Shown here: piece by piece, positions 753-60,670 of the stretch
How the letters are laid out: each line of letters begins with the position of its first letter
Numbering within the stretch: position 1 is the first letter of the stretch
Assembly (NCBI GenBank): GCA_038496445.1
Contig: JALMLS010000143.1
Location: 62,001-126,000, forward strand
DNA length: 64,000 nt
Reading direction: 5' to 3'
From: Trichosphaerium sp. ATCC 40318
Lineage: Eukaryota > Protista > Tubulinea
Notes under the pieces: generated by a model
The model's database searches: none
Told to the model about the DNA's origin: nothing
Seen by the model: the letters and a program-made list of their open reading frames with translations, nothing else
Position numbers and translations under genes: made by a program

Positions 753-3700
753 TTATTTCTGAGCACGCTCTCGTGCATACACACTAAAAGGCATAACCTT
801 TTGTCTTACAGGTGGTACAAGCATCACAACGGCAATAACTGCAAATATAAGGACCAAAAATACAATAGCAACAGAAATACCAATGATTGCTCCTGTTAAT
901 AATGAGCCATCTTCTGCCGTTTCAGAGCACGAGGAAAGTGATGAGAATATGCGCAGTAAAGTTGCATCATCTCGAGTTATGTTAATAAATACACTTGTAT
1001 AGCTAACACGTACCATTTAGAGTGGTACACTCAGCATTGATTGTTGCTGTATCACCAATGGTTATGTTGCAATTCAAAGATCGAATTTCAATAACATCAG
1101 ATTGAGGTTTGTTACCTTCGTTTGTGACGGATATCTCTCCGTCTATATTCACACATCCCCGAACTGTCATGTTTATCCCCGGTGTGTACTTGAGAGAAGT
1201 TCCAGATGGCAAACTGAAATCACCTAGATACTATACTTAGTAACGTTACAACTTAGCGGATTACCTCCAAAAACAATATTATCTGAAACTATCAACTCAT
1301 CCGTGACGGTAATATTATTGGGTATTACAATAGGAACGTTTAAACATATTGCATAGCAATCTGATAGTCCCAACGCCGAACAGATGGTTGAATCCTCACA
1401 GAAGTAATTGCCCTTAAACTTTGAACTATCGTTTTGTTAACAGCAAGGTAGATTTGTAAAAACTAAAAAAAGTACCAATCATTTATGGAGAACTCTTCTG
1501 TTGGGCACCAAAATCTATTGTTACTGACATCCCTAAAATATACTTGTGAGCGCAGAGAAAGAAGCCTTAGTGTGACTCACAGATCATTGATGGTGTTGAG
1601 GTATCCAGGCAATGGTCCATACAATTCATTGTTTGATAAATCACTTTAAATAAGTAAGTATACTACAATTAGTTTAAACGTTGAAACATGTTCATACAGT
1701 ATTGTTAACGTTTTGTTAAAGTTAATATTTTGAGGAAGCTCTCCTGAAAAAGAATTATTCGCCAACGTCAATTCGGCTACATTGAGTTCCAGAATCGAAG
1801 CAGGAATAGACCCAGAAAACTTATTCTGTCCCAAATCGCTAAATGGATTAGTACTGAACGTGTCTTAAGCACAAGACTCACATCCTAGTATACTGATCCC
1901 AAAACATTCTGGTTGGTACTAGATTCTCAATTCCACCAGAAAATGCATTGCCCGCGAGTACACTGTTGTGTTAACTATCAAATAAGTTTAATTTCTACGT
2001 ACGTAATTCTGTATCTAGCCAGGACAGGTGGTATGTCACCACTGAGGTTGTTGTTTCGTACAGTACTATAAAAACTAAGATGTCTATTCTAATATTTCTG
2101 ACCTTACAATATGCTACCGCCGCCAGAGTCAGAGTTAACCTCACGCCAAGGAAGAACTCCTGAGAAAGCATTTTTTCGCAGATTCCTAGAAATGTTTGAG
2201 GGCAAGTGTATCATTAAAACTAAATTATAAACACGTACAAATGAGAGATACTGTACATCCAATCAGGAAGATTGCCTGTCAAGTTATTGGACTGTAGTTC
2301 TCTTATTTGTTTTTTTAATTAGTTCACATTATCACCCACTAGTAAAGCTAACGTACAATCTATTCAAATTGAGTGATTGTAAAAAGGCAGGCACTGTTCC
2401 TTCCAAGGAGCAATTTTCTAGCGCCCTAATAAAACATTTTAGTTCGGACTAAAATAGAGTGGCTGTATGTACAATGTTCTGAGTGCTGTCAACTCCTGAA
2501 AATGTTGAGGTATACTACCCAAGTCTGCGCTGTGCAATGCGCTAGCAAGTGTAAGTAGGCATTAAATAATAAAGGAATGTAGTACAAATGCTGTAGATTT
2601 CTAAAAATCTGAGCTGTTATTCGAGATATGTTCAATTGTATAGCTGATGAAAGACCCCTAAGTAAGTGAAATGCGTTACAACGTGGCTAGTATTAACAAT
2701 TTAAACTGCGTACAAATGTACCAAACCATTCATGTATATCTCCTCAGGTATAGTTCCGCTTATCTCAGTAGAAGAGAGGTCTCTAGGCTGGATTAAGAAC
2801 ATCAAGACTGACTGAGAGACGCACAGCTTTTGTAAGCTATAAGAGGTGAAATTTCGCGGAATTGTGCCGCCAATAGATGTACGTGAAAGATCTCTAAAAA
2901 TAACAAGTAAGAATAGCTCTCTTTGACCCAACGTACAAGGTTTCTAGGTTAACAAGACGCTCAAATAGATTTTGAGGTATTACGCCGGTTACATTTTCAT
3001 GCCCTGAAATAACGCTATATCAATCAGAATGAGTTGCCATTTAGGCAAGCATTGTTTTACCAGAAATACTTACAGGTGTGTTAGGTTTAGTAGACGTTTC
3101 AAGTCTGGGATAGACCCTCTTAAACTTGACTCAGATTCTTGGACTAGGTGCCTAGTAAAATCACGTGAGACAAAAAGGCACCAGGTGTTCTACCGTACAG
3201 TTCTTTCAAGCTAGTCATATTTCCAATACATGCCGGAATTTCGCCTGAAATATCAGCAACTAATGTTCTTTGTGATGTTAGTGGCTGGTTGTTGTATGTA
3301 CACGCACAATTTTGTAAGTGACGTCAACTCACACAAGCTTTGTGTTATAGATACAAATATACTACGTCCCATGAGATCTCTACGAGATAAACACACTCAG
3401 CAAAATCTGCAAGGACGACAACGTACAGGCATTTTAGATTTCGAAAGTTTGCGAGTTCAAACGGCCACGTGATTAAATCACCATTCATGACGCTTAGTAG
3501 TAAAGTTAGGCTTTGACACTGTAAACCAAACAGTAAAAAGCGTACAGGTCTTCTAATGTGTTGTTTATACTGTCGAAAGCATTGGAGGATAAATTTAACA
3601 ACTTTGAGGAGCCAAGTTCCCTGCAGTTAACAAGTTTAGTATTCGCAAACACCACATTGCTTTCTCGCGCACAAGCCTGTAATAGCACCACCGTTACATG

Positions 3701-3890
3701 TTACCGCACTATGACTACAGAGCTAAAAGACAAAAGTCACTATTTGGGTTAATTTCTTTCGTACGCTATTATAAGACTCTTCAGGGTACATCGCCGCCAA
3801 CACTGCTTCAACGTCACTTTGTGCATGAGCAAAAGAACACACTGTAAGCAATAGTACAATGACTCGCAACGCTAGTACATTACTTTCCAT
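753..3890 (-). CDS. LRR receptor-like transmembrane protein (inverted, diverged paralog, copy E), multi-exon
   Basis: Signal peptide MESNVLALRVIVLLLTVCSFAHA; LRR exons (DLSRTSIGGTIP, DLSSTEISGTIP, LGQNKFSGSIP, LANNSFSGELP); juxtamembrane GCVNIDG..IRSLNC; TM AIIGISVAIVFLVLIFAVIAVVMLV; short tail. Confidence 0.9.
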
Positions 3891-4336
3891 TCAATGATGT
3901 CTGTTGAATTTTACAGTTCAATTTTGGTGGTTTAACTCTTTACCATTGACCATTCGCAGTATTTGTAAATCACGTGCACACAGCGACAATAGCGGGGTAA
4001 TGAGTAGTGTAATACCGCGTATTTCTCCACAAGGGCGAATACGTTACACGCGCGGAGAAATTGGTGAATACGTAAATATTTATCCCGCAAGTTTGGTAAC
4101 GCTAAAAACAGATAATCTTTAAACAAGGAGATGTACGCACACTGATTGTATGTGATTGCTAGTTGGTGAGATTTCAAAAGGATAAGTTTGAGATGATAGT
4201 TTACACTGGAAGTAATACAATATGAGGTTGATATTTATTGTTTTGTGTTTAACGGTTATAGTTCCTTGCTGTGATGAGATTGATATTTTTTCTGAAAGGC
4301 ACGTGTTAGTTTTGGAAAAAAATAGGAAACAAACGC

Positions 4337-5515
4337 TTATAAAGTGTACCTTTTGTTTATAGGGCTTTCAGTTTTTTCAATAGTAATGTCACCGAACCCT
4401 AGGCGTTCCAGAGCGTTTATAATCTCATTGTGGTTGTTCTCCATTGCAAGCTCAGTCATCACATAATTTAACATACTATTGTCTCCAGTACACCCTTGTA
4501 TAGCTTCTCGTGCATCATCACCATCCTCAAAATAAGGCCAATGAACCTCACCATCATTATCCGAATCTACAAAAACTTTGTAGAATGTTTCACCAAAGAT
4601 ATCAACTCTCTTTTTTGTTCCGTCTCCAAAATAAGCAGTTGCCTTCTTTTTCAAATTAATAAGATGACTCTCTTCTAAATCTGCACGACGCATAATCTGA
4701 CCAATGCAATGAGCGTCTTGTAGTAGTTTAATCTCTAATACTTCCATATCATACCTAAATCCACGTGTCAACAAACGACACATTGAAAAAAAGCCAAAAA
4801 AAAAAAAAAACACGTGCCCACTAATCTTGCTGTATAGTTCCAGTTTCTCTTGTATCAAAGGCGCCATCAACTCACCTTGTTCGATCTCCCATCCATCAAG
4901 ATTGTAGTGATTAATACCAGGATAAAGCGCATGGAATACAGCAATCAGAGCAGCTGTAGTATCAACATTTGCGTCGAAAGGATTTTGTATTGTAGCTTGT
5001 TCCAAAAAACCAGGAACTTTGGAGTTTTCGCAATCGCTCTCTGTAGCTTTTCTGTATTTCACAAAAGGCTGTAGTTCTATAAGTAGTGTACCGTCTGATG
5101 TAAAGCTATTAGCTTTAACCAACGCTTTCTTAAGGTTTTTGATGGCTGTGATGTGATTTGAAGTTGGTACGCCGTCATCAAGTCTCTCGAGGTATATTTG
5201 CTTGAACATAACGCCGTACGCGTCAAAATCGTACGTAGTGACGTCTCCTGTTATATGAAGCATCTGATCGATTGAACCCCTTGGAAACGTTACTGGGAGC
5301 TTCTCTAGAGTTGTTATATGCTTATCGCCGATATACACGGGCATTTTAGACTGCTTCCATAGATTTTTGTATACACTCGTTGGTAATAGGTCTATTGGCT
5401 TTCTCATTGTTCCCACTATCAATAAAGGCCTCGGTTCTGTTTTACGCCAATCAACACCATACATAACGAAAAGAACTGCTACCACAGCTACCATTACAAC
5501 GTGGATGACAGCCAT
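4337..5515 (-). CDS. Hypothetical protein with N-terminal signal/anchor; probable 63-nt GC-AG intron at 4755-4817
   Basis: 392-aa ORF; hydrophobic N-terminus; poly-T segment translating as VFFFFFGFF is bounded by GCACGT...TTTAG. Confidence 0.75.
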   Translation of the reverse strand: MAVIHVVMVAVVAVLFVMYGVDWRKTEPRPLLIVGTMRKPIDLLPTSVYKNLWKQSKMPVYIGDKHITTLEKLPVTFPRGSIDQMLHITGDVTTYDFDAYGVMFKQIYLERLDDGVPTSNHITAIKNLKKALVKANSFTSDGTLLIELQPFVKYRKATESDCENSKVPGFLEQATIQNPFDANVDTTAALIAVFHALYPGINHYNLDGWEIEQGELMAPLIQEKLELYSKISGHVFFFFFGFFSMCRLLTRGFRYDMEVLEIKLLQDAHCIGQIMRRADLEESHLINLKKKATAYFGDGTKKRVDIFGETFYKVFVDSDNDGEVHWPYFEDGDDAREAIQGCTGDNSMLNYVMTELAMENNHNEIINALERLGFGDITIEKTESPINKRYTL

Positions 5516-5782
5516 GTGAGGCGCCGTTTCGAAAACTGTTACTGTTATGTTGTCAGCGCTTACTTATGTGGGAATAAATTGATGCGCAATCAACCTCTCC
5601 AGAAGCGATAGGTAAGCATGAATGCATGATATCGCTCACGCACGTCAATTTGCAATAGACATAGCTTCTACTGTGATGTACGTGGTGTTCTTATTAAGAT
5701 GCTCGTTTTGGCTGATAAGTAATTACTTAAAAAGGAAAGTACTTCCTTTCTAAAGATTTTCCACCGCAGCTCTTTGTAAAGA

Positions 5783-8190
5783 ATGCAGTTACGCATATTA
5801 TTATCAATTGTTGTACTTGCACACTTAGCTCCTTCTGTGGTTGCTGACAGGGCAGATAACGACCCAAACAGGATATACTATGCTCAAAACAACAGAATGT
5901 TAACGTCCTACGAGCCAGAGTATGAAACAAATCGCATCATTTACGGTCCAACGGAGAAAAACATCACTTCTTTCGCAAAACACGGTGATTATATCTACTA
6001 CACGCTTCAAGATAGTAACACAATATCAATTGTAAGAAAAGCGTTCCTGCCGATTCTTCAGTTATTTCTCACAGTTTCCACAAGGTGGACATAAGAGGTG
6101 CTGAGAGTAAAGTATGGGAAACTTTAGACCAGGTTCCAACAGCGTTACGCATCGCAAGGCTACAGGATGGTAATAATTATCACCCACTTGTTTGCAATGG
6201 TTTAAAACTTACTGTTGTAGGTCACTACTACCTCGCCATCGCCACCAATGCAAAGCTTGCTTACTTTAAAGACTTGACAGCTGATTCAAGTTTGAAGAGC
6301 ATAAACGTTCCTTGTACGCCTTTAAACGTATTATTTTAACACTTATCGTTTATTTCAGTACGAATGAGGTTTAGTAACGTTTATGGCATTGATGTCGTGT
6401 TTTACAAGTACGTGCCACTGCGACTATCGATGAAGTATTGAGTTCCCGTGTAGAAACAATCCATACGTTTTGTTTTCAAACCAAGAAGGTTCTTTGCATC
6501 TTGTGACCTATGATTTGGCTTCAGAGTCTTCTCACATTAAATTTATTGGCAAGAATGCATCAGGCTTGGTATGCTTGCATGTATCCGTAGTGTACTGTTG
6601 CGAGATGGTGTAAACGTTTATCTAATAAGCTGCTTAGAAACGTATTTCGCGCGTTTTCTTCAAATGAGTTGTTTTACTGGCTCTTTTCTGATGGATTTGT
6701 GGCTGATAGAGATGTTAAAGGTATTCCTGATAATGGTATAACATCAATGGGAAGCGCAAATGGACAGTACGTTAATAAAAATTATTTGAAAAAAAAAATC
6801 AAAAGAAAATGACATTGTTTTTTTTTTCAATTAGATACTTCATTTCTGTGCCAAGTGAGAACTACGTTTCTGTCATAGATGGCTACTTCCAAGAAACTAC
6901 AAGAAAAGTACCAATAAGTTCAGATAAAATATTGGGAGTCAAGGCCACTGGAAGAGCTTACTGGTCTGAAGGTAAGTTTTCGTGTTTTTTTCTGACACAT
7001 TTTGACACGCAAATTTTGACATTTTGACACATTGTGCTAAACTTTTTCTATTTTAGGTGATATGTTATTCTCAACAGAAGCCACTGGAACTTTAGATCAA
7101 GTTCCGGTTTATGAACTACCACCAAGTCAATGTCAAAAACCAATCGCTGCAATTGATGTTATTCAACATGAGTCAAACGAAACTGTACGCCATTGCGTTT
7201 TTTCCTTTTTTTTGTACTGTTTTGACGTTTAATGTAGCTTTTCTATTCCTGTGGAAGTAATCTATTGAAAATGTCATTACACGGAGACGGAGTAGCTCAG
7301 GTATTCTCTTCTTTTGATCACGACATTACAGGTATATTTTGCTTCCAAAAACTCTAACGGAATATTACGCCCTTTAACAGTTTATTGTTAGATATTGCTC
7401 ATGAAAAATATGATGAACCTGCACTGTATGTTGTACAAAATACCTCTTCAATTGTAAAATTGGGCTTTGATGCAGAAGGAAACGCAAAGTAAGTAACAAT
7501 TTTTTCGTCTTTAGTTTTAACCCTTTTTAGGTCTGAGGTAATTGATACCAAACTCAAGAATCTGGTGAGAGTGAGCGAAAACCGCAAAGGTGAGAAATAT
7601 TTCAAAGGCTCTTTGAAATCTTCTAAATCAAGGAAACTAGATATTTTTGTACTTAGCCAAGATACTTCTTCAAACTATTCAGTTTACACGATTGATAAAT
7701 CGACACGTGAAGTTAAGCTCCTTGTCACAATTGGACTACCTCCTCAAGCAGTACCTGCCATTGAAGCTACACCACAATCTTTCTTTGTAGTAGCTGAGTA
7801 CAACGTAGACCAAAAGACGGTACAATTTTACATGATTTTCTAGCATCATGTTTTGATAGGAAACTATTCTTGCACATTACTAATTACATTTTAGGCTATC
7901 AGAGAGTATAGATTTGACAACATGGATCAACCAAGAACTACCCTAGAGCGCGATTTAATATACCTCGTTGGATACAAACCAGGGTATACTATATTGGTCT
8001 TTTATCACTTATTAATTGTTACCTATTTAGATATGTTCAAGTGGGTATACCAGAAAACAGGATTCTATACCGTATTTTGGAGGACTCTATAAGTACAACA
8101 TCTTTTATAGACACTAAGGCAATAGATTGGAGTAAGACAAGTGTAATGGCATACTGTGAAGACTGCATGGCACCTTCAGTTGGTAAAATA
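5783..8190 (+). CDS. Secreted protein, probable beta-propeller, multi-exon
   Basis: Signal peptide MQLRILLSIVVLAHLAPSVVA; repeated beta-strand motifs (IYYAQ, YIYYT, AYWSE, LYVVQ); GT..AG introns; ends ...YCEDCMAPSVGK*. Confidence 0.7.
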
Positions 8191-9118
8191 ATTGGTTAAA
8201 AAAAACCAATAAATAAATACCTGTTTCAACAAAATCAAAGGAGTTTATACACGTTGATAAATACTCTTTTTAATCTAGTAATCCAAGTATTGGTAAGATA
8301 AACAATGAACGTGGTTTGTCATAAACAAAGAAACTGTGACATTGTCTTTATTCTGTATTCTTTCGGTTTTGAGACTTTTTTGTGGTACTTAATCTTACCA
8401 TCTTCTTCGATATAAGAAGCCTTCACAAACTCTATTGCAATTGGCTTATCTGTTTTCTCGTTGAAGTAATAATGTGCTTGACATGATTTGTTTTCTTCGT
8501 CAATCATTTGGTTAACAATCATATAATAACAAGCTGCGTATTGCTATCATGCTCTATCTATTGTCTTCTCCCATTCCTCAATAGAGTTGTATTTTGTTGC
8601 AGCACCATTGACGATAAGTGAATGAATGTTCCTTTGCGTAGACCTCTACAATACTCTATAAGAAAGTCTACCGTTGTTTTTTGTTGTAGTTTAGCTATGT
8701 ATTCAGCGTGCATCTTTGATACTTTATCTTTTACACTTAGTTCAAACATTGCCATTTTTCAATGTTTTTTTAGTTGTTTGGTTGTATTATTATAATACGT
8801 GGAGAACTTGGTTTTATGGATATTTGCGAGTTTTCTATTTCCAAAATTGTACAACGCTAATGCCAGCAAAGCTATTTGCTATCAATGTTCAGAGAGTCTG
8901 TAGATTTTGTGAAGAATTAACAGAGAATGAGAAAATTACAAAGAAAATTACTATGTTAACTTCGAGAGATGTCAAGCTATTTATATCCAACTGAAGCTGA
9001 TCTTCCATCTAAATTGCTTCATGGCAAACCAAAGAGGATCTATTTGAAATTGGGCCTTAACAATAAGCTTCCTTATACTAAAACACTATTGTCCCGGTTT
9101 TCTCCCTTTCGTTCGAAA

Positions 9119-12100
9119 ATGCGGTGCCTCTTGTATATTAAAACAATAGTACTCTTGATAGTATTAGCATCGGAAATGACAACAGGGAACAGTGAACTTT
9201 ATGAACAGTTATCACAAAAGTACCCAGATAATCCGTCCTTTCACGTGCGTAGTTCTCATACTTTCGTATGTTTAAATTTACTTTTTTGTCTATCATTTAG
9301 ATCTGTAATGCGACTGAAGTCGTTTGTAATAGCGACAGCAACGTAGTAATAATGTACAAGTCAAATTACAGTTTTTGGGAACTAACACGTAATAGTACGC
9401 TCAGAAGTTCATTACAAATGCCTCTACCTGACAATGCTTTCGACCATTACAGGGACACATTAACTCATTTGTACGTAGTGACACTGTTAAAATACCTTCT
9501 AAATTAGTAATTGTAGAACCATAAGCGACCATGAAATCACGTGGAATTTAACTGCGAGTATCGAAAATCTAGCTAGTCTGTGTCACTTGTACGGTTCTCT
9601 TTTTTTTTACGTTATCTCAATGGTTGTGTTTAGGGAAATCGACGCAGAGTACGTGTCAGGGCCGTTCACGCCGTCACTGTGTAAGCTAGCAAATTTAACT
9701 TACGTGTACGCCATCACCGTAGAATCCAGTTGTACAACACGTGATTTTTTCGTACTGAACTAATTGTGTAGAGAGCTTCAAATGAGGTTTTCAGGAACGG
9801 TGCCAGAATGTTTAGGAGACATGATAGCTTTGGAAGAATTGTTCGTTGTAATTTCCTTTTAACGACTAACTCACTACAAGACACTTGAGACCCAGAAATG
9901 GTAATGAACTGTATGGACCAATTCCAGATTCAATTGTAAACCTACAAAATTTGAGAGAACTGTAAGGATCATTTGGTATTGTCTTGGCTCCTCATTTACT
10001 CCTTTTTTTTTCTGTAGCGATTTATTCTGGACTAGAGAAATCAATGGAACCCTTCCTGATGATCTTTTTGCAAAGCTTCCAAACCTTGAGTTGTTGTACG
10101 TGTAGATACTTTAACCAAAACATTAAACTGTTTATCAGACGTCTTGTAAGAACAAAAATTGAATGGACTGTACCAGATGTTCCTTCTAACTCTAGCCTAC
10201 ATTCTTTGTACGTCTATACTCCCAATAGAATCTAACTTAGCTAAGGACATTAGATTATAGTACTAAAATAAATGGCACAATACCTGACATATTCTACACA
10301 CGTGGATTCAAGCGACTGTACGCTTAATGTATCATACCACAACTGATAATAACAAAGCGGTATCCGCCAAGTTCCGTCTTATCTTACAAGCAGTTTTAAC
10401 ATTACTCGTATTCAGGTGCCTCATATCATAACACACTTGTACGAGAAAATTACTTCCCAATAGTTTTTAAATTAAGTTCTAGGCAAATAGAAAACTACAA
10501 CTTAACCTCATTTCCGAGTATATTATATGAAATGTCCAATCTTACAGAACTGTACGCCGTATAAACTTCAATTCAATTTATAATAGATTCCTAGAGTAAT
10601 GGCACATTGTGAACTTGAAGGTTCTCTTCCAAGTGTACTGGGTACCTTTATTAATTTGAGAAAATTGTACGTCCATCGTACTATTATCACAGTCAAATTG
10701 TTAACAAGTTTTTAGGGATGTTAGTTACAACAGACTAACTGGAACCCTTCCTGAGTGGATTTACAACATCACCGAAATGTACCTGGTTTAAATCTGTTCT
10801 ACTTTGTTATTTATACTTCACTTAGAGATCTGAGAAATAACTTGCTTGAAGGGGACCTGCCACAACAATCATCAACTAACAATAAGTTTAGAATGTAATT
10901 ACTTATTTATCTTATGTTGTACTAACTGATATTTTGCAGAATTCTTGAAGATAACTATCTATCAGGCAGTCTCAGTGGTGTATTTAGCGACTATAATCAC
11001 GTGTACGTTACCTTGATGCTATTGATAATTAGTAATTACTTATCGAAGGTATATATCAAACAATTTAATAAGTGGAGGACTTGAGTATTTATCAAACAGT
11101 ACCAATAAGCAAGCAATGTACCTAATTCTACTTGCTTATGTATTCCTAACTTACAACCGCACAGAAGCGCTTCATACAATCGCTTTACTGGAATACTTCC
11201 TACAGCGTTTGCAGATGAACCTTATGATCTAATGTATGAGTATTTATCCTAACCAGCTAATTTTGTTTTTGTAGAGATTTGAGCTACAACGAACTTAAAG
11301 GAACTATTTCATCTTCTCTCATGAAACTGAATGTAGCCGTGTTAAGGCTAAATGATAATCAACTTTCAGGAGAGCTTCCTAATGTTGATGAAATTACAAT
11401 GGATGAGTTGTACGTTTAACAATTCACATTCTTACATTCCTAAAACAAAAAGGGATTTATCAAACAACAAACTATTTGGACCATTACCTGAATATCTTGC
11501 AGCACTCAATGAAATGTTCGTTTCTCTTTTGTGTATAAACTCACACTCACTTTACCGTTAGTGACGTTCGTAATAATAGATTTTGGTGTCCGTCTGTAAA
11601 ATTTGAAGCAAGCGATTGGTAAGACTATGACCCGTACCCTTAATAACACAAATATTAACTCATTTGTAGTTCTCAGTTTAATGATTCTTTTGGAAACAAT
11701 TACTTCTGTGATGAGTCTGGTATAACCTGTGAAGAGATAGGAAGCCTTAACTGCAGTAATGTATGTCGAAGCCTCCCTATTGTTATACCTCAAGATGTGA
11801 TTGTAAATGACAAGTTGATACTTACAAACAATGTTATCATTGAAGGTACAATACATGATGGAATCATGTTTAATAACCGTGTCCTAATGTTCTAAATGAC
11901 AGGTGACTTCAGTATATCAACCAACAGCTCTATCGAGAATACACCAGGCCTACAGATCAACGTGAGTGGATGTGTAAGTATAAACGGAAGTGTGGATGTG
12001 ACAGAAGGTGATACTTCAAATGACAATTTACTTGAAATTCATAGTTTGAATTGTACAATAAGTCTTGGTGATACATTCACAGCTTCCACACCAACTTGTA

Positions 12101-12386
12101 CTCTCAAACACACAACAAACGGTATGCTTTATCGTCAGTGACTTTAAATTGACAACTACTCATACTTTGTCTGTCAGCACAATCAAACTTGTTGACTGTA
12201 TTCAAACCATCAACATGTTCTGAAAATGATGAAACTTCAGGATTGTCGATGGGTGTAATCATCGGTATTTCAATTGCTGGTGCATTGATCGTTGTTGTCG
12301 TACTTATTATCATTTCGTTTTCTGTTCCAGCAATTAGAAACACCATTCTACCATACAGAGAGTACAATAAAAGAAATTCATATTAA
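9119..12386 (+). CDS. LRR receptor-like transmembrane protein, copy A (~24 exons)
   Basis: MRCLLYIKTIVLLIVLA signal; Cys cap ICNATEVVC; ~19 plant-type LRRs (LxLxxNxLxGxLP) mostly one per exon; RFWCP cap; TM VIIGISIAGALIVVVVLIIISFSV; tail PAIRNTILPYREYNKRNSY. Confidence 0.92.
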
Positions 12387-12794
12387 TTTAGCTAACACGA
12401 CTTACTATGGCTAATAAATCTGCCTAAATTTTCTCTTGCGCTTTCCCATGGTTCCCCCTCACCAATAAAAATGCAACCACTTTCCTGCAACCATCTCCTC
12501 CTTTGTTCTCCTGCTTCCCTGTTAATAATTATTCCAAGTCACCAACAACTCAACCATCAAATCAACTCCACAGCAGCGGTACTAAACCAACACCTATTGA
12601 CATTTAATTACATTTTACTATGTCTCTCAGAGTTCAAAATATGCTTATAAAAGAGCTGCAGGCATTACTATGTTAGTTCTATTATTGGGTATTAGCTTGG
12701 TGTCAACACTTAACTAATGGTTATCTACCTCAATCAACAAAACGTTATCCCACGAGGACTCCTATTTTGCCGATTTCTCGCTTTTGCTTCAATA

Positions 12795-12911
12795 ATGCGG
12801 TGCGATTTGTATATAAAAACAACCGTACTCTTGATAGTAGTAGCAATCGCAACCGGGAGCAATGAGCTTTTTGAACTGCTATCGAAGGAATCCGATAGTA
12901 CATCCTTTCAC
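12795..12911 (+). pseudogene. Truncated exon-1 remnant of an LRR receptor paralog
   Basis: MRCDLYIKTTVLLIVVAIATGSNELFELLSKESDSTSFH followed by donor gtgcgt, homologous to copy A exon 1; sequence then switches to the upstream region shared by copies B/C/D. Confidence 0.8.
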
Positions 12912-13101
12912 GTGCGTGTTATTTATCCAGGATTTAGGTTTCTTCTCCGTTGTGGCGTACTAAACAAGGGCTTATGACGTACCTTGTTTATCAAGCACTG
13001 TAGAGATATTACACAAAATGTAATAACAAGCGCACGTTTTTGTACTCCTACCCTAATTCAAAACTTTTCCAAACAACCCATTTTCTCCCTTTTACTACAA
13101 C

Positions 13102-16100
13102 ATGTGGTATCTCTCATATATCACAACAATAGTACTCTTGACGGTACTAAATGTTGAAATGACAAAAGGGAATACACTCGTCGACGAACTCGCAAAGAAG
13201 TACGCTAATGATGCTCCCTTTCACGTGCGTAATTCCAATACATTCTAATACTCTTAATTTACCTTGTACTCCGCGCAGATTTGTAATGCGACAAAAGAAG
13301 TAAGCTGTAACGAAGTTGGCGAGGTAATAGGAATGTACGTGTAATAAATTATTGTGTCGTTTGATAAACACGTGTTAGTTTCCTTTCGAATAGTCAAGTG
13401 CCGGAAATGAATCTTCCTGACGATACGTTCGATATGTTTAACGCAACATTAACAGAGTTGTACGATATGTCTTCTTTAAAGCTGGTTTTGAACGTGTGGT
13501 AGGATCATATCAAGCTCTTCCGTCAGTTGGAATCTTACAATTAAGGACAACCTGTTCGACAAGCTCCAGACCATGTGAGTTTTTACTTTTTTCGATTTTT
13601 TAGGTGATTAGTATTAATCTCTTTTCCCTTCGGTAGAGAGCTTGATACGGCTACTATAATAGGAGCATTTACACCATCTCTATGTCAGTTACCTTCTTTA
13701 AGAGTATTGTACGTGATCACGTGTCGCTTACATCCAATTGCTGAACATCATAGGGATCTTTATATAAGACTTTCGGGGACTATTCCAGAGTGCTTAGGAG
13801 AAATGACAACATTGGAGAGATTGTATGTATACATACATAATTTTTATTCTGTTTGTGCTTATTTTACGTACCAAGAGTGCTGAGATCTCGGGCGAGTACT
13901 CAAGAATTGGAAGGACCAATTCCTAATTCTATCTTGAAGCTTAACGAAAGTTTAATAGAATTGTAAGTTGTCTAGTTTGTGCCTAATCACTTAATAACAT
14001 TCTTTTCTTTAGTAGTTCCTATTATAATAACCTGAATGGAACTCTTCCTGATAATCTGTTCGGACTGCTTCCTAACCTTGAAACATTGTACGCAAACCTG
14101 CTAAGATAAAGGATGCTTAATTTTGTTTGTATTGAAGAGCTCTGGTCAGCTCCAATATTGAATGGACAGTACCAATGGTACCTGACAACTCTGCTTTGCA
14201 TTCCTTGTACGTATTGTTTTTCGTTGATTGTGGGTTTAACGTCAAAAAAATAGAGTGTTGGACTTCAGCAGGAGTATAAACGGAACAGTACCCGAAACAT
14301 TCTACTCGCGCGGATTTAAGCGTTTGTACGAAGAAGCACATTAGAATAACAACTTGTGTCTGACAACTAAAAAGGTGTATCCGATTAGTTGATTCTCTCA
14401 TAGATAGCTTTAGTTTTGGTAAAATAACAGATGAAATAGCTCCAAACATAACTGATTTGTACGAATACTAACTTTGTTTATTGGAAAGCAGCTGACACAA
14501 ACTGATAGGCACATTCAACGCAAAAATATCACTAATTTTCCACAAACAATAATATTGCAAATGACAAACCTTACCTCATTGTACGCTTCAAGAGACATTA
14601 TTTGAGGCTGTACTTATTAAACTATTTTGGTTAGAGATATGGTAGAGTGTAATCTACAAGATAGTCTTCCTAACTTAGATCCTTTACCTTTGAAGAGGCT
14701 GTATGTTACTTATAAATTATCTGCGTTTTTTTTCTTATAAAGTGTTAGGAATCTTAAAGAAAACAACCTAAGTGGAGAGCTTCTTGATTGGATATTCGAA
14801 ATCAACGATCTGTAATGAAAATAGTTTACAAGTTTGTTAACTCCTACATTAGAGACCTGAGTTATAATTCTTTTGATGGAGACTTACCACAAAGATCATC
14901 AAACATGAGTAACTACTTCAGAATGCACGTGATATCGATGAGTTTTATTTCTAACTGTTAGTTTTTCCAGAAATCTGGAACATAATAATCTGTCAGGAAG
15001 CCTAAGTTCTGTATTTGACGACTACAACAGAGTGTACATTTAAAACATAAATGCAATGGGTGGTATTTAACTTTAACAAAGGCATATATCAAACAATTTA
15101 ATAAGTGGAGGACTTGAGTATTTATCAAACAGCACTCGTAAACGAATAATGTACCTAATTTCTATACTTCTTGATTTATTCCTAATTTGCAATCCTGCAG
15201 AAGCGCTTCTCATAACCGTTTTACTGGAATACTCCCAAATACCTTTGTAGATGAACCTTATGATGAAATGTATGCTATTTATTGAGGACGATAACTGCTT
15301 GTTTAACTAATGTTGTTTTTGTAGAGATTTGAGCCACAACGAACTTAAAGGAACTATTTCATCTTCTCTCATGAAACTGAATGTAGGCGTGTTAAGGCTA
15401 AATGATAATCAACTTTCAGGAGAGCTTCCTAATGTTGATGAAATTACGATGGATGAGTTGTACGTTTAACAATTCACATTCTTACATTCCTAATACAAAA
15501 AAGAAATTTATCAAACAACCAACTATTTGGACCATTACCTGGATATCTTGAAACACTAGACAAAATGTACGCTTTTCATTGCATGTTCCCCCATATTAAT
15601 CACAACCTTCAGAGGAGTTGGTAGTAATAGATTTTGGTGTCCGTCTGTAAAATTTGAAGCAAGTGATTGGTAAGACTATGACCCGTCCTAATAACACAAA
15701 TATTAACTCATTTGTAGTTCTCAGTTTAATGATTCTTTTGGAAACAATTACTTCTGTGACGAGTCTGGTATAACTTGCCAAGAGATAGGAAGCCTTAACT
15801 GCAATAATGTATGTCGTAGCCTTCCTATTGTAATACCCCAAGATGTGATTGTAAATGACAAGTTGATACTTACAAACAATGTTATCATTGAAGGTACATG
15901 ATGGAATTCAATTGAAGTTTTATAACCGTTCTCAATGTTCTAACTATTCTAAATGACAGGTGACTTCAGTATATCAACCAACAGCTCTATACAGAATGCA
16001 CCAGGTCTACAGATCAACGTGAGTGGTTGTGTAAGTATAAACGGAAGTGTGGATGTGACAGAAGGTGATACTTCAAATGACAATTTACTTGAAATTCATA

Positions 16101-16430
16101 GTTTAAATTGTACAATAAGTCTTGGTGATACATTCACAGCTTCCACACCAACTTGTACTCTCAAACACACAACAAACGGTACGCTTTATCGTCAGTTGAA
16201 AACTACTCATACTTTGTCCATCAGCGCAATCAAACTTGTTGACTGTATTCAAACCATCAACATGTTCTGAAAAGGATGAAACTTCAGGATTGTCAATGGG
16301 TGTAATCATCGGTATTTCAATTGCTGGTGCATTGATCGTTGTGGTTGTAATTATTATTGTTGTACTTTCTGTTCCAGCAATTAGAAACACCATCCTACCA
16401 TACAGAGAGTACAATAAAGGAGATTTATAA
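13102..16430 (+). CDS. LRR receptor-like transmembrane protein, copy B
   Basis: MWYLSYITTIVLLTVLNVEMTKG; same exon architecture as copy A; tail ...YREYNKGDL. Confidence 0.92.
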
Positions 16431-16745
16431 AATGATAGTTTTTGACCTCAGTGTTAGTGTAAAGTTTTCTGTTCTTATTGAAACTGGTTGCAGATAACAC
16501 TCCGTGAAGCTTTTCAAAAATTTGCATAGAAAAAAAATTGTTAAAAGTTGATTGAACATTTCTCAAGTAGGATTTAGGTTTCTTCTCCGTTGACGTACAA
16601 AGGGCTTATGACGTACCTTGTTTATCAAGCACTGTAGAGATATTACACAAAATGAATAACAAACGCACAATTTTTTGTACTGGCTATCCACCTACCCTAA
16701 TTCAAACCTTTTCCAAATAACCCATTTTCTCCCTTTTACTACAAC

Positions 16746-19700
16746 ATGTGGTCTCTCTTGTACATCATAACAATAGTACTCTTGACGGTACTAAATGTTG
16801 AAATGACAAAAGGGAATACACTCGTCGACGAACTCGCAAAGAAGTACGCTAATGATGCTCCCTTTCACGTGCGTAATTCTATTGTTATTTTAATACTCTT
16901 AATTTACCTTGTACTCCGTGTAGATCTGTAATGCGACAAAAGAAGTAACCTGTAATGATGTCGGCGAGGTAATAGGAATGTACGTGTAGTAAATTATTGT
17001 GTCGTTTGATAAACACGTGCTAGTATCTTTTTGTAACCACGTGTTAGTCACCTTTTGTATAATAATGTACCTAAAATGAATCTATCAGTTGATACGTTTG
17101 ATATGTTTAACGAAACATTAACAGAGCTGTACGATAGTCTCCGTTAAAAGTTTGTTTTGAACGTGTTGGTAGAACCATAAAAGGCTCTTCTGTTACTTGG
17201 AATTTTTCTGTTAGGGAGAATCTGTTCGAAAAGCTCCAAACCATGTGAGTTTTTACTTTTTTCGGTTATTTCGGTGATTGGTTATTAATGTTGTTTTTTG
17301 CTAGAGAGCTTGACGGGCCTACAATATCTGGAGCACTTACACAGCATATGTGTCGACTACATGATTTAAGAGTATTGTACGTGTTCACGTGTTGCTTACA
17401 TCCAATTTTCTAAACAATACAATTTGCAGGGATCTTTTTTTAAGACTCTCGGGGACAATCCCAGAGTGCTTAGGAGAGATGAGAGCATTGGAAAGGATGT
17501 ATGTATTAAATTTTATTCTATATTTGCTTATTTTATGTACCAAGAGTGTTGAGATCTCGAGTTAATCAACAATTAGAAGGACCAATTCCTGATTCTATTT
17601 TGAACCTCCAAAATCTAATAGAATTGTAAGTTACCTAGTTTGTGCCTAATTCACTTAGTAACATTCTTTTCTTTAGTAGTTCCTATTATAATAGACTGAA
17701 CGGAACTCTTCCCAGTGATCTGTTCGGACAGCTTCCTAACCTTGAAACATTGTACGTGCGAGAACATCCTTACTACGTAAAAAGCAGGCGTAATTCTTTT
17801 ATTGAAGAGCTCTGGTCAACTCTAATATTGAATGGACGGTACCAAATGTACCCACCACCTCTGCTTTGCATTCCTTGTACGTATTGTTTTCTTTATTTAA
17901 TTGAAGATGGATTTAACGCCATAAAATAGAGTGTTGGACTTCAGCCAACGTATAAACGGAACAGTACCTGAAATATTCTATTCACGTGGATTCAAGCGCT
18001 TGTACGGAAGAAGCACAATAGAATAACAACATGTCTGACAACTAAAAAGGTGTATCCGATTAGTTGACTCTCTCATAGATAGCTTTAGTTTTTATAGAAT
18101 AACAGATGAAATAGCTCCAAACATAACTGATTTGTACGAATACTAACTTTATTTATTGGAAAGCAGCTGACACAAACTGATAGGCACATTCAACGCAAAA
18201 ATATCACTAATTTTCCACGAACAATAATATTGCAAATGACGAACCTTACCTCATTGTACGCTTCAAGAGACACCATGAAGTTGTACTTTATTAAACTATT
18301 TTTTTTAGGGATATGGTAGAGTGTAATCTACAAGGGCGTCTTCCAATCTTAGATACTTTAGGTTTGGACAGGCTGTATGTTAACATGAATACTTTGTTAA
18401 TACTCCACTTTATTCTCATAAACTGTTTAGGGGTTTTCAAAAGAACAACCTTTACGGAGAACTTCCTGAGTGGATATTCGAAATCAGCGATTTGTAATGA
18501 AAACAACTTACGACTTTGTTAACACCTATATTAGAGACCTGAGTTATAACTCTTTTGATGGAAACTTACCACAGAGATCATCAAACACGAGTAACCACCT
18601 CAGAATGCACGTGATGTCGATGAGTTTTATTTCTAACTTTTTGCTTTCTCATAGAAATCTGGAACATAATAATCTGTCAGGAAGCCTAAGTTCTATATTT
18701 AACGACTACAATATTGTGTACGTTAAAAACAGTAACACAACTTGTGATAATTACTTTAACAAAGGTATATTTCAAACAATTCAATAAGTGGAGGACTTGA
18801 GTATTTATCAAACAGCACTCGTAAACGAATAATGTACCTAATTTCTATTTTTGGTAATGTACTCCTAATTTGGCACCCTACAGAAGAGCTTCACACAATA
18901 GGTTTACTGGAATGCTTCCTACCAATTTTACGGGTGGACCTTATGATGAAATGTGTGCTGTTTATTTGAGTTTAAAAACAATAATTGTTTGTTAGAGATT
19001 TGAGCCACAACGAGTTTCAAGGAACTATTTCATCGTCTCTAATGAAACTGAATGTGGCCGAATTAAGGCTAAATGATAATCAATTTTCAGGAGAGCTTCC
19101 AAAAGATATTGACATTACGATAGACAAGCTGTACGTTAAGTTAAGACATACTTAAATTCACATTAAAACAAAAAAGGGATTTATCGAACAATCAACTATT
19201 TGGACCATTACCTGACTACCTTGCAACACTCGATGAAATGTTCGTTTCTCAATATGTGTATAAACTCATACTTACTTTGACCCTTAGTGAAGTTCGTAAT
19301 AATAGATTTTGGTGTCCGACTGTAGAATTTGAGTCAGGCGATTGGTAAGACAATGTGAGAATCTAATTTGTAACAAATTATAGCGCTCAGTTTAACACTA
19401 CTTTTGGAAACAATTACTTCTGTGACGAGTCTGGTATAACTTGCCAAGAGATAGGAAGCCTTAACTGCAGTAACGTATGTCGTAGCCTTCCTATTGTAAT
19501 ACCTCAAGATGTGATTGTAAATGACAAGCTGATACTTACAAACAATGTTATCATTGAAGGTACATGATGGAATTCAATTGAAGTTTTATAACCGTTCTCA
19601 ATGTTTCTAACTATTCTAAATGACAGGTGACTTCAGTATATCAACCAACAGCTCTATACAGAATGCACCAGGTCTACAGATCAACGTGAGTGGTTGTGTA

Positions 19701-20105
19701 AGTATAAACGGAAGTGTGGATGTGACAGAAGGTGATACTTCAAATGACAATTTACTTGAAATTCATAGTTTAAATTGTAAAATAAGTCTTGGTGATACAT
19801 TCACAGCTTCCACACCAACTTGTACTCTCAAACACACAACAAATGGTACGCTTTATCATAAGTGACTTTACCTTCGAAAAATGCTCATACTTTGTTCAGC
19901 GCAATCAAACTTGTTGACTGTATTCAAACCATCAACATGTTCTGAAAAGGATGAAACTTCAGGATCGTCGATGGGTGTAATCATTGGTATTTCAATTGCT
20001 GGTGCATTGATTGTTGTGGTTGTAATTATTATTGTTGTACTTTCTGTTCCAGCAATTAGAAACACCATCCTACCATACAGAGAGTACAATAAAGGAGATT
20101 TATAA
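16746..20105 (+). CDS. LRR receptor-like transmembrane protein, copy C
   Basis: Tandem repeat unit 3644 bp after copy B ATG; same architecture. Confidence 0.92.
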
Positions 20106-20409
20106 AATGATAGTTTTTGACCTAATCAGTATTAGTGTAAAGTTTTCTGTTCTTATTGAAAACTGGTTGCAGATAACGCTCCGTGAAGCTTTTCAAAAAT
20201 TTGCATGGAACGAAATTGTTATTAATCCAGGATTTAGGTTTCTTCTCTGTTGTGACGTACTAAACAAGGGCTTATGACGTACCTTGTTTATCAAGCACTA
20301 TAGAGATATTACACAAAATGAATAATAACAAGCGCACATTTTTTGTACTGGCTATCAAACCTAATTCAAACCTTTTCCAAACAACCCATTTTCTCAATTC
20401 TACTACAAC

Positions 20410-23400
20410 ATGTGGTCTCTCTTGTACATCATAACAATAATACTCTTGACGGTACTAAATGTTGAAATGACAAAAGGGAATACACTCGTCGACGAACTCG
20501 CAAAGAAGTACGCTAATACTCCCTTTCACGTGCGCAATTCTATTGTTTTTCTAATACTCTTAATTTACCTTATACTCCGCGTAGATCTGTAATGCGACTA
20601 AAGAAGTAACCTGTAATGATGTCGGTGAGGTAATAGGAATGTACGTGTAGTAAATTATGGTATCTTTTTTGTAACCCCGTGTTAGTCACCTTTTGTATAA
20701 TAATGTACCGAAAATGAATCTATCGGTTGATACGTTTGATATGTTTAACGAAACATTAACAGAGCTGTACGATAGTCTCCGTTAAAAGTTTGTTTTGAAC
20801 GTGTTGGTAGGACCATAAAAGGCTCTCCTGTTACTTGGAATTTTTCTGTTAGGGAGAATCTGTTCGAAAAGCTCCAAACCATGTGAGTTTTTACTTTTTT
20901 CGGTTATTTCGGTGATTGGTTATTAATGTTGTTTTTTGCTAGAGAGCTTGATGGGACTACAATATCTGGAGCACTTACACAGAACCTGTGTCGACTGCAT
21001 GATTTAAAAGTATTGTACGTGTTCACGTGTCGCTTACACATCCAATTGCTGAACATCATAGGGATCTTAATATAAGACTCTCGGGGACTATTCCAGAGTG
21101 CTTAGGAGAGATGAGAGCATTGGAAAGGATGTATGTATTAAATTTTATTCTATAGTTGCTTATTTTATGTACCAAGAGTGCTGAGACCTCGAGTTAATCA
21201 ACAATTGGAAGGACCAATTCCTGCTTCTATTTTGAACCTCCAAAATCTAATAGAATTGTAAGTTACCTAGTTTGTGCCTAATCATGTAACATCTTTCTGT
21301 AGTAGTTCCTATTATAATAGACTGAATGGAACTCTTCCTGATAATCTGTTCGGACAGCTTCCTAACCTTGAAACATTGTACGTGCGAGAACATCCTTACT
21401 ACGTAATTCTTTTATTGATTTTATTGAAGAGCTCTGGTCGGCTCTAATATTGAATGGACGGTACCAAATGTACCCACCACCTCTGCTTTGCATTCCTTGT
21501 ATGTATTGTTTCTCTAATTAGTTGAGGATGGATTTAACGTGATAAAATAGAGTGTTGGACTTCAGCCAACGTATAAACGGAACAGTACCCGAAATATTCT
21601 ACTCACGTGGATTCAAGCGTTTGTACGGGAGAAGCACAATAGAATAACAACTTGTGTCTGACAACTAAAAAGGTGTATCCGATTAGTTGATTCTCTCATA
21701 GATAGCTTTAGTTTTGATAGAATAACAGTGGAAATAGCTCCAAACATAACTGATTTGTACGAATACTAACTTTGTTTATTGGCAAGCAGCTGACACAAAC
21801 TGATAGGCACATTCAACGCAAAAATATCACTACTTTTCCGCGAACAATAATATTGCAAATGACGAACCTTACCTCATTGTACGCTTCAAGAGACACCATG
21901 AAGTTGTACTTTATTAAACTATTTTTTTTAGGGATATGGTAGAGTGTAATCTACAAGGACGTCTTCCAATCTTAGATACTTTACCTTTGAAGAGGCTGTA
22001 TGTTAACACGAATACTTTGCTACTACTCCACTTTCTCATAAACTGTTTCTAGGGGTTTTCTAAAGAACAACCTACACGGAGAACTTCCTGAGTGGATATT
22101 CGAAATCAGCGATTTGTAATGAAAACAACTTACGACTTTGTTAACACCTATATTAGAGACCTGAGTTATAACTCTTTTGATGGAAACTTACCACAGAGAT
22201 CATCAAACATGAGTAACTACTTCAGAATGCACGTGATATCGATGAGTTTATAACTAACTTTTTGTTTTCTCATAGAAATCTGGAACATAATAATCTATCA
22301 GGAAGCCTAAGTTCTGTATTTAACGACTACAATATTGTGTACGTTAAAAACAGTAACACAACTTGTGATAATTACTTTAACAAAGGTATATTTCAAACAA
22401 TTCAATAAGTGGAGGACTTGAGTATTTAGCAAATAGTACTCGTAAACGAATAATGTACCTAATTTCTATTTTTGTTAATGTACTCCTAATTTGGCACCCT
22501 ACAGAAGAGCTTCGTACAATAGGTTTACTGGAATGCTTCCTACCAATTTTACAGGTGGCCCTTATGATGAAATGTGTGCTGTTTATTTGAGTTTAAAAAC
22601 AATAATTGTTTGTTAGAGATTTGAGCCACAACGAGTTTCAAGGAACTATTTCTTCGTCTCTAATGAAACTGAATGTGGCTGAATTAAGGCTAAATGATAA
22701 TCAACTTTCAGGAGAGCTTCCAAAAGATATTGACATTACGATGGACAAGCTGTACGTTAAGTCACGTTCTTAAATTCTCATTAAAATAAAAAAGGGATTT
22801 ATCAAACAATAAACTATTTGGACCATTACCTGGATATCTTGAAACACTCAATGAAATGTTCGTTTCGCTTTTGTATAAGCTCATACTCACTTTACCGTTA
22901 GTGACGTTCGTAATAATAGATTTTGGTGTCCGTCTATACAATTTGCAGCAAGTGATTGGTAAGACTATGACCCGTACCCTTAATAACACAAATATTAACT
23001 CATTTGTAGTTCTCAGTTTAATGATTCTTTTGGAAACAATTACTTCTGTGACGAGTCTGGTGTAACTTGTGAAGAGATAGGAAGCCTTAACTGCAGTAAT
23101 GTATGTCGTATCCTTCCTATTGTAATACCTCAAGATGTGATTGTAAATGACAAGCTGATACTTACAAACAATGTTATCATTGAAGGTACATGATGGAATT
23201 CAATTGAAGTTTTATAACCGTTCTCAATGTTCTAACTATTCTTAATGACAGGTGACTTCAGTATATCAACCAACAACTCTATCCAGATTATACCTGGTCT
23301 ACAGGTCAACGTGAGTGGTTGTGTAAGTATAAACGGAAGTGTGGATGTGACAGAAGGTGATACTTCAAATGACAATTTACTTGAAATTCATAGTTTGAAT

Positions 23401-23727
23401 TGTACAATAAGTCTTGGTGATACATTCACAGCTTCCACACCAACTTGTACTCTCAAACACACAACAAACGGTACGCTTTATCATAAGTGACTTTACCTTC
23501 GAAAAATGCTCATACTTTGTTCAGCGCAATCAAACTTGTTGACTGTATTCAAACCATCAACATGTTCTCAAAAGGATGAAACTTCAGGATTGTCGATGGG
23601 TGTAATCATTGGTATTTTAATTGCTGGTGCATTACTTGTTGTCATTGTAATTATTCTTGTTGTATTTTCTGTTCCAGCAATTAGAAACACCATCCTACCA
23701 TACAAAGAGTACAATACTAAACGCTAA
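20410..23727 (+). CDS. LRR receptor-like transmembrane protein, copy D
   Basis: Tandem repeat unit 3664 bp after copy C ATG; tail ...YKEYNTKR. Confidence 0.92.
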
Positions 23728-58847: not shown

Positions 58848-60670
58848 TTAGCGCTGCGCTAGAGCCACAAGACATTTTGTCTGCCTCCCAACATCGTCTA
58901 AAGTTCTTGGCTAGTTGAGAAGAGAGTAGTATTAGTGTTATAACTCTAATGTGTCATTGTCAAGTTTTCTACCCACATTTTTTTTCATTTCGAGAATATC
59001 CAGAATTTCTTTTTCGTGCTTAGTAGCTTTAAGCAATGACTTAACATCTTCAGAACTTGCTTGATTTGACTTGAGAAGTGATTTAATATCCTCTATCGTG
59101 TCCCTCTTGGATGCTAAAACGCCTGTACCAGCTAGGGGAAGCCAAGTAAGGGCGTACCAAGCCATGCTCGGTTTCTTCTTTGCAACTACATCACAAAGAG
59201 CCGAGAACTTTTGCTGATAGCAGTAATCGAGCCTCTCATATGCAAGTAAAAGGTCTCCTGAAAGATTCACCAGGTAACCGTTTTTTTTCTTGCATAGTAG
59301 CATACGTTTTTTGTAGTTCTTCAAGCTGTTTTAACATATATTGAGGAGATCCAAGTGATATTGTTGATTCTGGCGGATTCTTCATTTTTTCTAGGATTTC
59401 CTTAAACATTATCTTGCCTGTAATAAACACTATTAACAAACGAAAAAGTGTTTACTCTTGATTGATACCTTGGCACGATTCAGCCCTCTTTCTAATCGGA
59501 ACATGATCCGGGTGTCCGAGGCATTCCAAGTAATGATATTTTATTGTTTTATGTTGCATTTCGTGACCTTTGATGGCAAGCGCTTGATAATTATTGGGGT
59601 GCTTGCTTATCAAGCGATAAACCCAGTTTAGGTCGTTCAAATTCTTTAAACGCACGTTTGAACCGTTTATCATTATGAGAACATAGTTCGCACTTATGAT
59701 ACCGTGTTTGGAAAGAATATCCCACCATTCATCCGAATTGTTGTCCAATCCTGGTGTGTCGACAATCTCGACCATGGGGTTGGTCCTCAAAGTGCCGATG
59801 GTGCAGCCTTTAGACTCCTCGGGATCAACATCAGGAGGGTGGTCGCCCTTGCCTTGCGTTAAGAAGTTAAACATCGTTGTTTTACCACAACCGCTTGAAC
59901 CAATCAATACCACTCGTTTCTTTGCAAGCTTTGTGTCGTATAGCTTTTTTGCGTGGTCAAGAGCGATTTTAGCATCCTACAAAACAAAAACGGTTGGACG
60001 TTTATAAAATACCCGCTTTACGGTACAATTACTTACCTTTATGGCGTTTTGTTCAGATGTTCGGATAACTGTGTAGTAATCCTGCCACTGTTTTTCTGAC
60101 CCAACAAATAGAAATTCTTTCTTGTTTACGTAAACAATGACGAAAGCTCTATCTGCTTCATCTTTTTTAAGGGCAGTTCCTACAAAAAAAGTTCGTTATT
60201 GATACAGTTCCTTTGTAACTTTTGTTTCAAATGACCATACCTGTTAGCTCTAGTTCTGTAGGCGCGCGGATTTCTTCAATGAGCTCCCACCACAGTAGCG
60301 CTACAAATTCGTTCTGCTTTAGTGTAGCCAATATAATAACATCTCCCATGAAGATTGCTTTGTACTCCTTCGTGCCATGTTTGTTTACTAATAAAACTTT
60401 TTCTTCCCTGTGCCACAGTTAGGAACTGGATACTCTGTGAACAACTTACCAACTTGCTGTTCTCGCTACATTGCCAAGAGCACCGAGCTAGGGATAAACG
60501 TATTAGAGTGATAGCAGTAGAAGTAAACGAACGTTTGTAGGTAGGTTCTTTATGTCACTTTTTAGCTCAGTAGCTGGTACGCTCTGAGGCTCTGCCATGA
60601 TGTACTTGGTGTCAAATAAATGAACGAAATTTAGTCTTTGAAAATCGTTTATCTGGTCTAGGTAGGTCAT
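58848..60670 (-). CDS. P-loop GTPase (AIG1/MMR_HSR1-like G domain) with coiled-coil C-terminus, multi-exon
   Basis: VVLIGSSGCGKTT (G1), GCT (G2), IVDTPGLD (G3); apparent 1-nt frameshift near 59281-59312. Confidence 0.8.

Follow-up and report, generated by a model that had tools for sequence, protein, structure and literature searches.

The locus described here raises the question of whether an array of leucine-rich repeat (LRR) receptor-like genes, built with one repeat per exon, is a device for generating receptor variants or a conventional gene family that has kept the exon pattern of its origin. The array spans positions 753 to 23,727 of a 64,000-nucleotide (nt) stretch of DNA from the amoebal protist Trichosphaerium sp. 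ATCC 40318 (hereafter, the window), which corresponds to C19:62001-126000 on the forward strand of contig JALMLS010000143.1 (here C19) within a 70.3-Mb, 642-contig genome. An earlier account of the window, made from its letters without database searches (the sequence-only reading), had proposed a family of kinase-less surface receptors poised for combinatorial diversification. Our analysis retained one part of this interpretation, namely kinase-less type-I membrane proteins with plant-type LRRs and symmetric, skippable exons, and did not retain the part concerning diversification. The genes form a tandem and inverted cluster encoding predicted type-I surface proteins that are built like plant LRR receptor-like proteins; they probably bind ligands, with a conserved membrane-proximal part that works with a shared partner. 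Genes of this design have previously been described in plants, brown algae and ciliates, and the locus represents an ordinary receptor-like family in expansion rather than a novel way of diversifying receptors.

The window has a G+C content of 35-41%, long open reading frames (ORFs) are nearly absent, and short introns are abundant, with GTACGT as the commonest donor, which marks the DNA as eukaryotic. Splice models were built with a dynamic-programming script, with a minimum exon length and with GC and GTT donors allowed, and were then corrected by hand against the paralogs. Scoring by maximal ORF length was dropped because introns were read through, as was scoring that rewards introns, because long exons were over-spliced. 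The curated models yielded five intact paralogous LRR genes in the window, E on the minus strand and A-D in tandem on the plus strand, and two more copies (F and G) adjoin them upstream. The whole cluster thus consists of three minus-strand and four plus-strand genes, as follows (lengths in amino acids, aa).

Gene E: 3890-753, minus strand; 23 exons, 679 aa; signal peptide, 19 LRRs, stalk, transmembrane helix and tail PPVRQKVMPFSVYARERAQK; intron phases 0, then 2 in 19 introns, then 1 and 1.
Gene A: 9119-12386, plus strand; 24 exons, 726 aa.
Gene B: 13102-16430, plus strand; 24 exons, 729 aa.
Gene C: 16746-20105, plus strand; 24 exons, 727 aa; the reference copy.
Gene D: 20410-23727, plus strand; 24 exons, 725 aa.
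Gene F: 8186-4924 of the segment C19:52501-62000, minus strand; 739 aa, same 24-exon phase pattern; directly upstream of the window.
Gene G: 4839-1642 of the same segment, minus strand; same 24-exon phase pattern; directly upstream of the window.

These models reproduced the inventory given by the sequence-only reading: five paralogs with E inverted and A-D in tandem, approximately 24 exons per gene (24 in A-D and 23 in E), and a spacing of B-D of about 3.65 kb, the gene starts being 3644 and 3664 nt apart. The outer limits also agreed, as the models end exactly at 753 (stop codon of E) and 23727 (stop codon of D).

The encoded proteins share one order of parts, consisting of a signal peptide, a Cys cap, approximately 20 LRRs, a Cys-rich cap, a Cys-containing stalk of approximately 130 aa, an acidic stretch, a single transmembrane helix and a short tail. 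A hydrophobic N-terminus is present in all seven models (e.g., MWSLLYIITIVLLTVLNVEMTKG), the signal peptide being judged by inspection, and 15-20 N-glycosylation sequons occur per protein. The reference copy illustrates how these parts are distributed over the exons.

Gene C, exons 1-2: 16746-16979, plus strand; signal peptide and N-terminal cap with its Cys pair (ICNATKEVTCN), and a phase-0 intron between the two exons.
Gene C, exons 3-21: 17048-19344, plus strand; 20 LRRs, one per exon of 57-84 nt, with two in the exon at 18996-19130; flanking introns in phase 2.
Gene C, exons 22-23: 19384-19845, plus strand; Cys-rich C-terminal cap and stalk module of approximately 130 aa.
Gene C, last exon: 19900-20105, plus strand; acidic juxtamembrane stretch EKDETSG, transmembrane helix GVIIGISIAGAL... 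and 18-aa tail PAIRNTILPYREYNKGDL.

The repeats themselves belong to the plant-specific LRR class. The consensus of 99 repeats, with percentages of occurrence, was L53 x x L62 x L61 x x N49 x L32 x G53 x L44 P39, with a modal length of 23-24 aa. When the exon encoding two repeats was searched against Pfam, LRR_1 passed its cut-off (25.1 bits versus 20.6); single LRR exons matched no Pfam family, because they are too short and because the repeat model is interrupted at their borders. The profile that was built for the two-LRR exon from the seven genes matched 81 sequences in the PDB at E ≤ 1, and the best 60 of these were all plant LRR proteins, mostly ectodomains of receptor kinases or receptor-like proteins, from which the class assignment follows. 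The matches included GSO1, HAESA, FLS2, HSL1, MIK2, PSKR1, PEPR1, BRI1, RXEG1, ERL1/2, TDR, TMM and SERK/BAK1. A six-frame genome search with LRRNT_2 (PF08263) gave no match in the window; exon-wise searching is blind to the N-terminal cap because intron 1 splits it (…APFH|ICNATKEVTCN…), and the Cys pair is found at this place. The repeat-by-repeat listing revealed no non-LRR island (loop-out) domain, only irregular LRRs of 19-29 aa.

At the C-terminus, all the proteins have a transmembrane helix, then a tail of 17-20 aa (approximately 15-19 aa in the sequence-only reading) and a stop codon. The kinase motifs HRD, DFG and GxGxxG were absent from all six frames of window positions 1-24500, and there is no room for a kinase between the genes because the intergenic gaps measure only 305-716 nt. 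Considering the short tails and the plant-type LRR ectodomain, "kinase-less receptor-like protein" is a fair description of the predicted architecture. The transmembrane helix shows small-xxx-small spacing, and the tail motif VP-x-[IVC]-[RK]-x-x-[IV]-[LM]-P-[FY] is common to A-D and E-G even though the two groups share only 31-39% protein identity. The tail motif was not recognised as any of the known signals for sorting or docking.

The register between exons and repeats is highly regular. Phase-2 introns accounted for 99 of the 114 introns in the five window genes, and the phase string runs 0, then twenty times 2 (19 times in E), then 1 and 1. With one intron in three expected to be in phase 2, the binomial tail probability of 20 out of 23 in a single gene is approximately 1.6e-7; the phase-2, one-repeat-per-exon pattern is therefore real and far beyond chance. 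In all seven genes, every intron between two LRRs is in phase 2 and lies in the second L of LxxLxLxxNxLxGxLP, which is the first Leu of xxLxLxx. The proposal that introns split one conserved hydrophobic codon after its second position thus held for the LRR-LRR introns, the codon being mostly Leu or Ile (split residues in the window genes: L 56, I 27, V 5, F 5, C 5, T 1). The likeness to plant LRR genes suggested previously was also borne out, as phase-2 introns in rice LRR-kinase genes interrupt the codon for the first Leu (or the equivalent residue) of xxLxLxx, with a typical exon of approximately 72 nt (PMC3050792). Introns in the array are 38-100 nt long (median 48), and symmetric exons, with phase 2 at both ends, make up 19 of the 22 internal exons in each of A-D and 18 of 21 in E. 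Their lengths are 57-87 nt in the window genes and 57-90 nt across the seven, mostly 63-72 nt, and one exon per gene (135-141 nt) encodes two repeats.

Formally, such exons can be skipped without a frameshift, as the sequence-only reading had stated. Joining any LRR exon to any other keeps the frame, and because 93 of 94 upstream junction halves end in NT, the junction residue is L, I, M, F or V in 98.9% of combinations. These properties would suit combinatorial receptor diversification, in which symmetric exons are skipped, duplicated or swapped by splicing or recombination to give many variants. There is a precedent in the brown-algal ROCO genes, where one LRR is encoded per 72-bp phase-2 exon, and exon shuffling together with alternative splicing has been proposed as a source of the immune repertoire (PMC11378527). 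Sequence exchange between copies by gene conversion, which such a system could also draw upon, is likewise real at the present locus.

The history recorded in the copies points in another direction. Protein identity was 91% between C and D, 84% between B and C, 83% between B and D and 67-69% between A and B-D; it was 54% between E and F and 47% between G and either of these. Gene A is a mosaic relative to B-D, with exons 1-16 being 65-66% identical and exons 17-24 being 90-93% identical. Introns in the latter part were 79-85% identical, and individual introns reached 95-100%. Because the introns were homogenised too, the similarity of the 3' third of A reflects sequence exchange and not protein constraint. 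Consistently, the three possible informative-site patterns among A-D were clustered along the genes (39 runs versus 59.8 ± 3.6 in shuffles, p ≤ 1e-4). A further trace of rearrangement lies between A and B.

Orphan A-like first exon: 12795-12911, plus strand; intact signal-peptide exon of 39 codons with donor GTGCGT.

Precisely at the donor of this exon begins its fusion to the upstream region common to B, C and D, a junction that marks a recombination or deletion. Either the exon is what remains of a lost copy, or B can use it as an alternative first exon, in which case the intron would be 367 nt long. The exons of A-D, F and G do not differ in number or in order (24, collinear). The only change in repeat number within the cluster is exon 17 of E (1882-1962, minus strand, 81 nt), a hybrid exon in which the start of one repeat is fused to the end of the next; this repeat was lost by intra-exon deletion, and the change is therefore not an exon-boundary event. 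Unlike those of recently shuffled arrays, the LRR exons differ in length, and the best exon-to-exon identity within gene C was only 45-61%, so that no recent exon duplication has taken place. Duplication, loss and short-tract gene conversion are thus documented at this locus; exon shuffling is not.

Selection tests gave a concordant picture. Nei-Gojobori ratios of nonsynonymous to synonymous substitution (dN/dS), estimates of which are blurred by gene conversion, were 0.33-0.63 at the predicted concave-face positions (five per repeat), 0.32-0.36 at other LRR sites and 0.24-0.61 outside the LRRs. No site class exceeded 1, and diversifying selection on the concave face was not found. Nonsynonymous change was 1.3-2.0 times as frequent on the predicted concave face as at other LRR sites, and this excess was significant only for A-B (p = 1.7e-5). 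The copies are under overall purifying selection, with dN/dS of 0.24-0.63 in all classes, an outcome that had been named beforehand as speaking against a diversified recognition system. Taking together the fixed order of 24 exons, the identity of at most 61% among exons, the intra-exon nature of the change in E, the dN/dS values below 1 and the previous publication of this gene design, the notion of an array poised for combinatorial diversification was not upheld, and we consider this mode of diversification at the locus improbable.

The same values bear on the possibility that the cluster represents a recent segmental duplication whose members are on their way to becoming pseudogenes. The orphan first exon could be taken as a sign of such decay, as could the weakened proximal acceptor in the last intron of E.

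Last intron of E: 914-1013, minus strand; distal acceptor cAG, giving a 100-nt intron; proximal acceptor cGAG, giving a 43-nt intron at 971-1013.

The two acceptors are in frame and 57 nt apart, and F and G read cAAG at the proximal site. Use of the proximal acceptor would give a protein of 698 aa that regains the 19-aa acidic, Cys-containing juxtamembrane segment of F and G, which distal use drops. On the other hand, the seven ORFs are intact over 23-24 exons, splice sites are kept at 31-39% protein identity, and dN/dS lies well within the purifying range given above, which makes decay very improbable. Three orthologous introns in the tandem copies use a GC donor; the corresponding intron 15 of A begins with GTAATT.

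Intron 15 of B: 14925-14970, plus strand; GC-AG intron with donor GCACGT.
Intron 15 of C: 18607-18654, plus strand; GC-AG intron with donor GCACGT.
Intron 15 of D: 22229-22275, plus strand; GC-AG intron with donor GCACGT.

The family extends beyond the cluster. The two-LRR exon was found at no fewer than 20 loci, i.e., at least 20, in the genome, several of them in tandem arrays, and the stalk module was present at 15 places.

C198:65394-81877: loci with the two-LRR exon and/or stalk module; five tandem copies at approximately 4-kb spacing.
C183:11821-42266: loci with the two-LRR exon and/or stalk module; a tandem run.
C35:244715-252101, C32:291883-292707, C111 and C19:198269: further loci with the two-LRR exon and/or stalk module.

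Near-identical stalk modules were also observed on C298 and C463; these are possibly haplotigs or a recent duplicate. The stalk module matched no Pfam family, and a stalk profile searched against 1.84 billion representative proteins returned only four weak matches (E ≥ 3.6e-9). These were repeat-rich SprB, beta-helix or haemagglutinin-repeat proteins and were taken as compositional, not homologous. Among metagenome contigs, the profile gave five chance matches, and the one inspected was a bacterial secreted enzyme. AlphaFold2 applied to the 72-aa stalk exon with 12 paralogs gave a mean predicted local distance difference test score (pLDDT) of 49.8, which is unusable. The family was likewise not found in protein collections, and the stalk appears to be lineage-specific, without detectable relatives outside its own genome.

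These features can be combined into a working explanation. The one-repeat-per-exon design would be the inherited trace of an array that was built by exon duplication, and would not serve for active shuffling. Different extracellular ligands, such as prey, microbes or the surfaces of conspecifics, might be bound by the divergent N-terminal LRRs on their concave face, while the homogenised C-terminal LRRs, stalk, transmembrane helix and tail could engage a shared partner. Such a partner might be a co-receptor or the endocytic or cytoskeletal machinery, and would supply the signalling output that the proteins do not possess. The conservation of the tail motif and transmembrane helix across copies that are otherwise 31-39% identical suggests a specific intracellular or intramembrane interaction of this kind.

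Several points weigh against this explanation. The main rival is that the proteins serve in adhesion or as a surface coat, that is, in cell-substrate or cell-cell adhesion or in surface protection without signalling, the tail acting only as an anchor or sorting element. The same data also agree with a role that is purely adhesive or structural: the proteins lack a signalling domain and carry numerous sequons, and the family includes several tandem arrays. Protist surface LRR families such as the BspA-like proteins also comprise several tandem arrays. The conserved tail and helix, and an LRR class that matches plant ligand-binding receptors, argue for the receptor interpretation, although both are compatible with adhesion as well; we regard adhesion as a genuine possibility, if a clearly less probable one. 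In addition, the enrichment of nonsynonymous change on the concave face was weak in the recent pairs C-D, B-C and B-D (p = 0.06-0.26), and partner-dependent signalling is an analogy with plant receptor-like proteins. The gene models are predictions supported by splice consensus, by open frames and by the agreement of seven paralogs as divergent as 31-39% in protein identity; the predicted architecture was derived from searches with individual exons and from local scripts applied to spliced models. Even so, a ligand-binding surface protein whose conserved membrane-proximal part works with a shared partner remains the interpretation that we favour.

Between E and A there are two genes that do not belong to the family. 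The first, at 4337-5515 on the minus strand, is an intronless ORF of 392 aa that matched no Pfam family and had no identical protein on record; the second, at 5789-8040 on the plus strand, has several exons, and its introns are of mixed phase (uncurated model). Elsewhere in the window, an open frame at 59452-59913 on the minus strand matched the GTPase family MMR_HSR1 (E = 9.6e-8) and is probably a single exon of a larger gene.

What makes the locus of wider interest is the combination shared with plant LRR-receptor genes, namely the plant-specific LRR class together with the exact position and phase of the introns. Because both are shared, the one-LRR-per-exon receptor ectodomain gene might predate the split between Amoebozoa and Archaeplastida, or might have been transferred between them with its introns; we offer this only tentatively and consider it unlikely on balance. 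If it were true, the array would offer a view of how plant-type surface receptors originated. Actual use of the symmetric exons in combinatorial splicing is less likely still. In our opinion, the most interesting point raised by the locus is whether its intron position, common to plant receptor genes, goes back to a common ancestor or to convergence. Plant-type LRR ectodomain receptors outside plants bear on the origins of plant surface immunity and peptide signalling. In a phagotroph, the array is also a reasonable candidate for the recognition of prey or microbes. Reports of LRR-kinase-like sequences exist for Amoebozoa, where they were only recently catalogued (PMC13091385), and the present locus adds an intron-resolved, kinase-less example.

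Among known systems, several comparisons can be drawn. The array resembles plant LRR receptor-like proteins (Cf-4/Cf-9 of tomato, TMM, RLP23 of Arabidopsis, RXEG1) in its signal peptide, its Cys-capped plant-specific LRRs, its acidic juxtamembrane stretch, its single transmembrane helix with GxxxG-like spacing and its short kinase-less tail. Both also occur in tandem clusters with exchange, with variable N-terminal and conserved C-terminal LRRs; at the tomato Cf-4/9 locus, the N-terminal LRRs are variable, the C-terminal LRRs are conserved, and exchange takes place between tandem copies. In contrast to the plant proteins, the array comes from an amoebal protist, lacks an island domain and has a stalk of approximately 130 aa, and whereas many plant receptor-like protein genes are intronless, the array genes have 22-23 introns. 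With the variable lymphocyte receptors of lampreys, the array has in common that LRR surface receptors are diversified by the copying of patches between LRR sequences. However, the lamprey receptors arise by somatic assembly, in which an incomplete germline gene is combined with flanking cassettes, whereas the array consists of complete genes that undergo gene conversion over evolutionary time; an incomplete germline gene of the lamprey type was not found here, as each of the seven copies has an ORF that is complete between signal peptide and stop.

Phase-2 LRR exons are themselves widespread. The LRR introns of gonadotropin receptors are all in phase 2, and the LRR-ROCO genes of the brown algae Ectocarpus and Saccharina share with the array the encoding of one LRR per phase-2 exon (PMC11378527). 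The brown-algal genes encode cytoplasmic GTPases and have uniform 72-bp exons, a variable exon number, reported positive selection and documented splice variants (PMC11378527); the exons of the array are variable in length, old and fixed in number, and the LRR class and exon register also differ. In Tetrahymena, tens of thousands of 90-bp LRR exons lie between phase-2 introns, and the exact 90-bp length, the thousands of genes, the recent clonal exon expansions and the association with a retrotransposon that characterise this system have no counterpart in the array (PMC6564038). The rice LRR-receptor-kinase groups with 10-27 exons (ERECTA/SERK type), which differ from the array genes in carrying a cytoplasmic kinase, have introns at the same position and in the same phase, with one or sometimes two LRRs per exon (PMC3050792).

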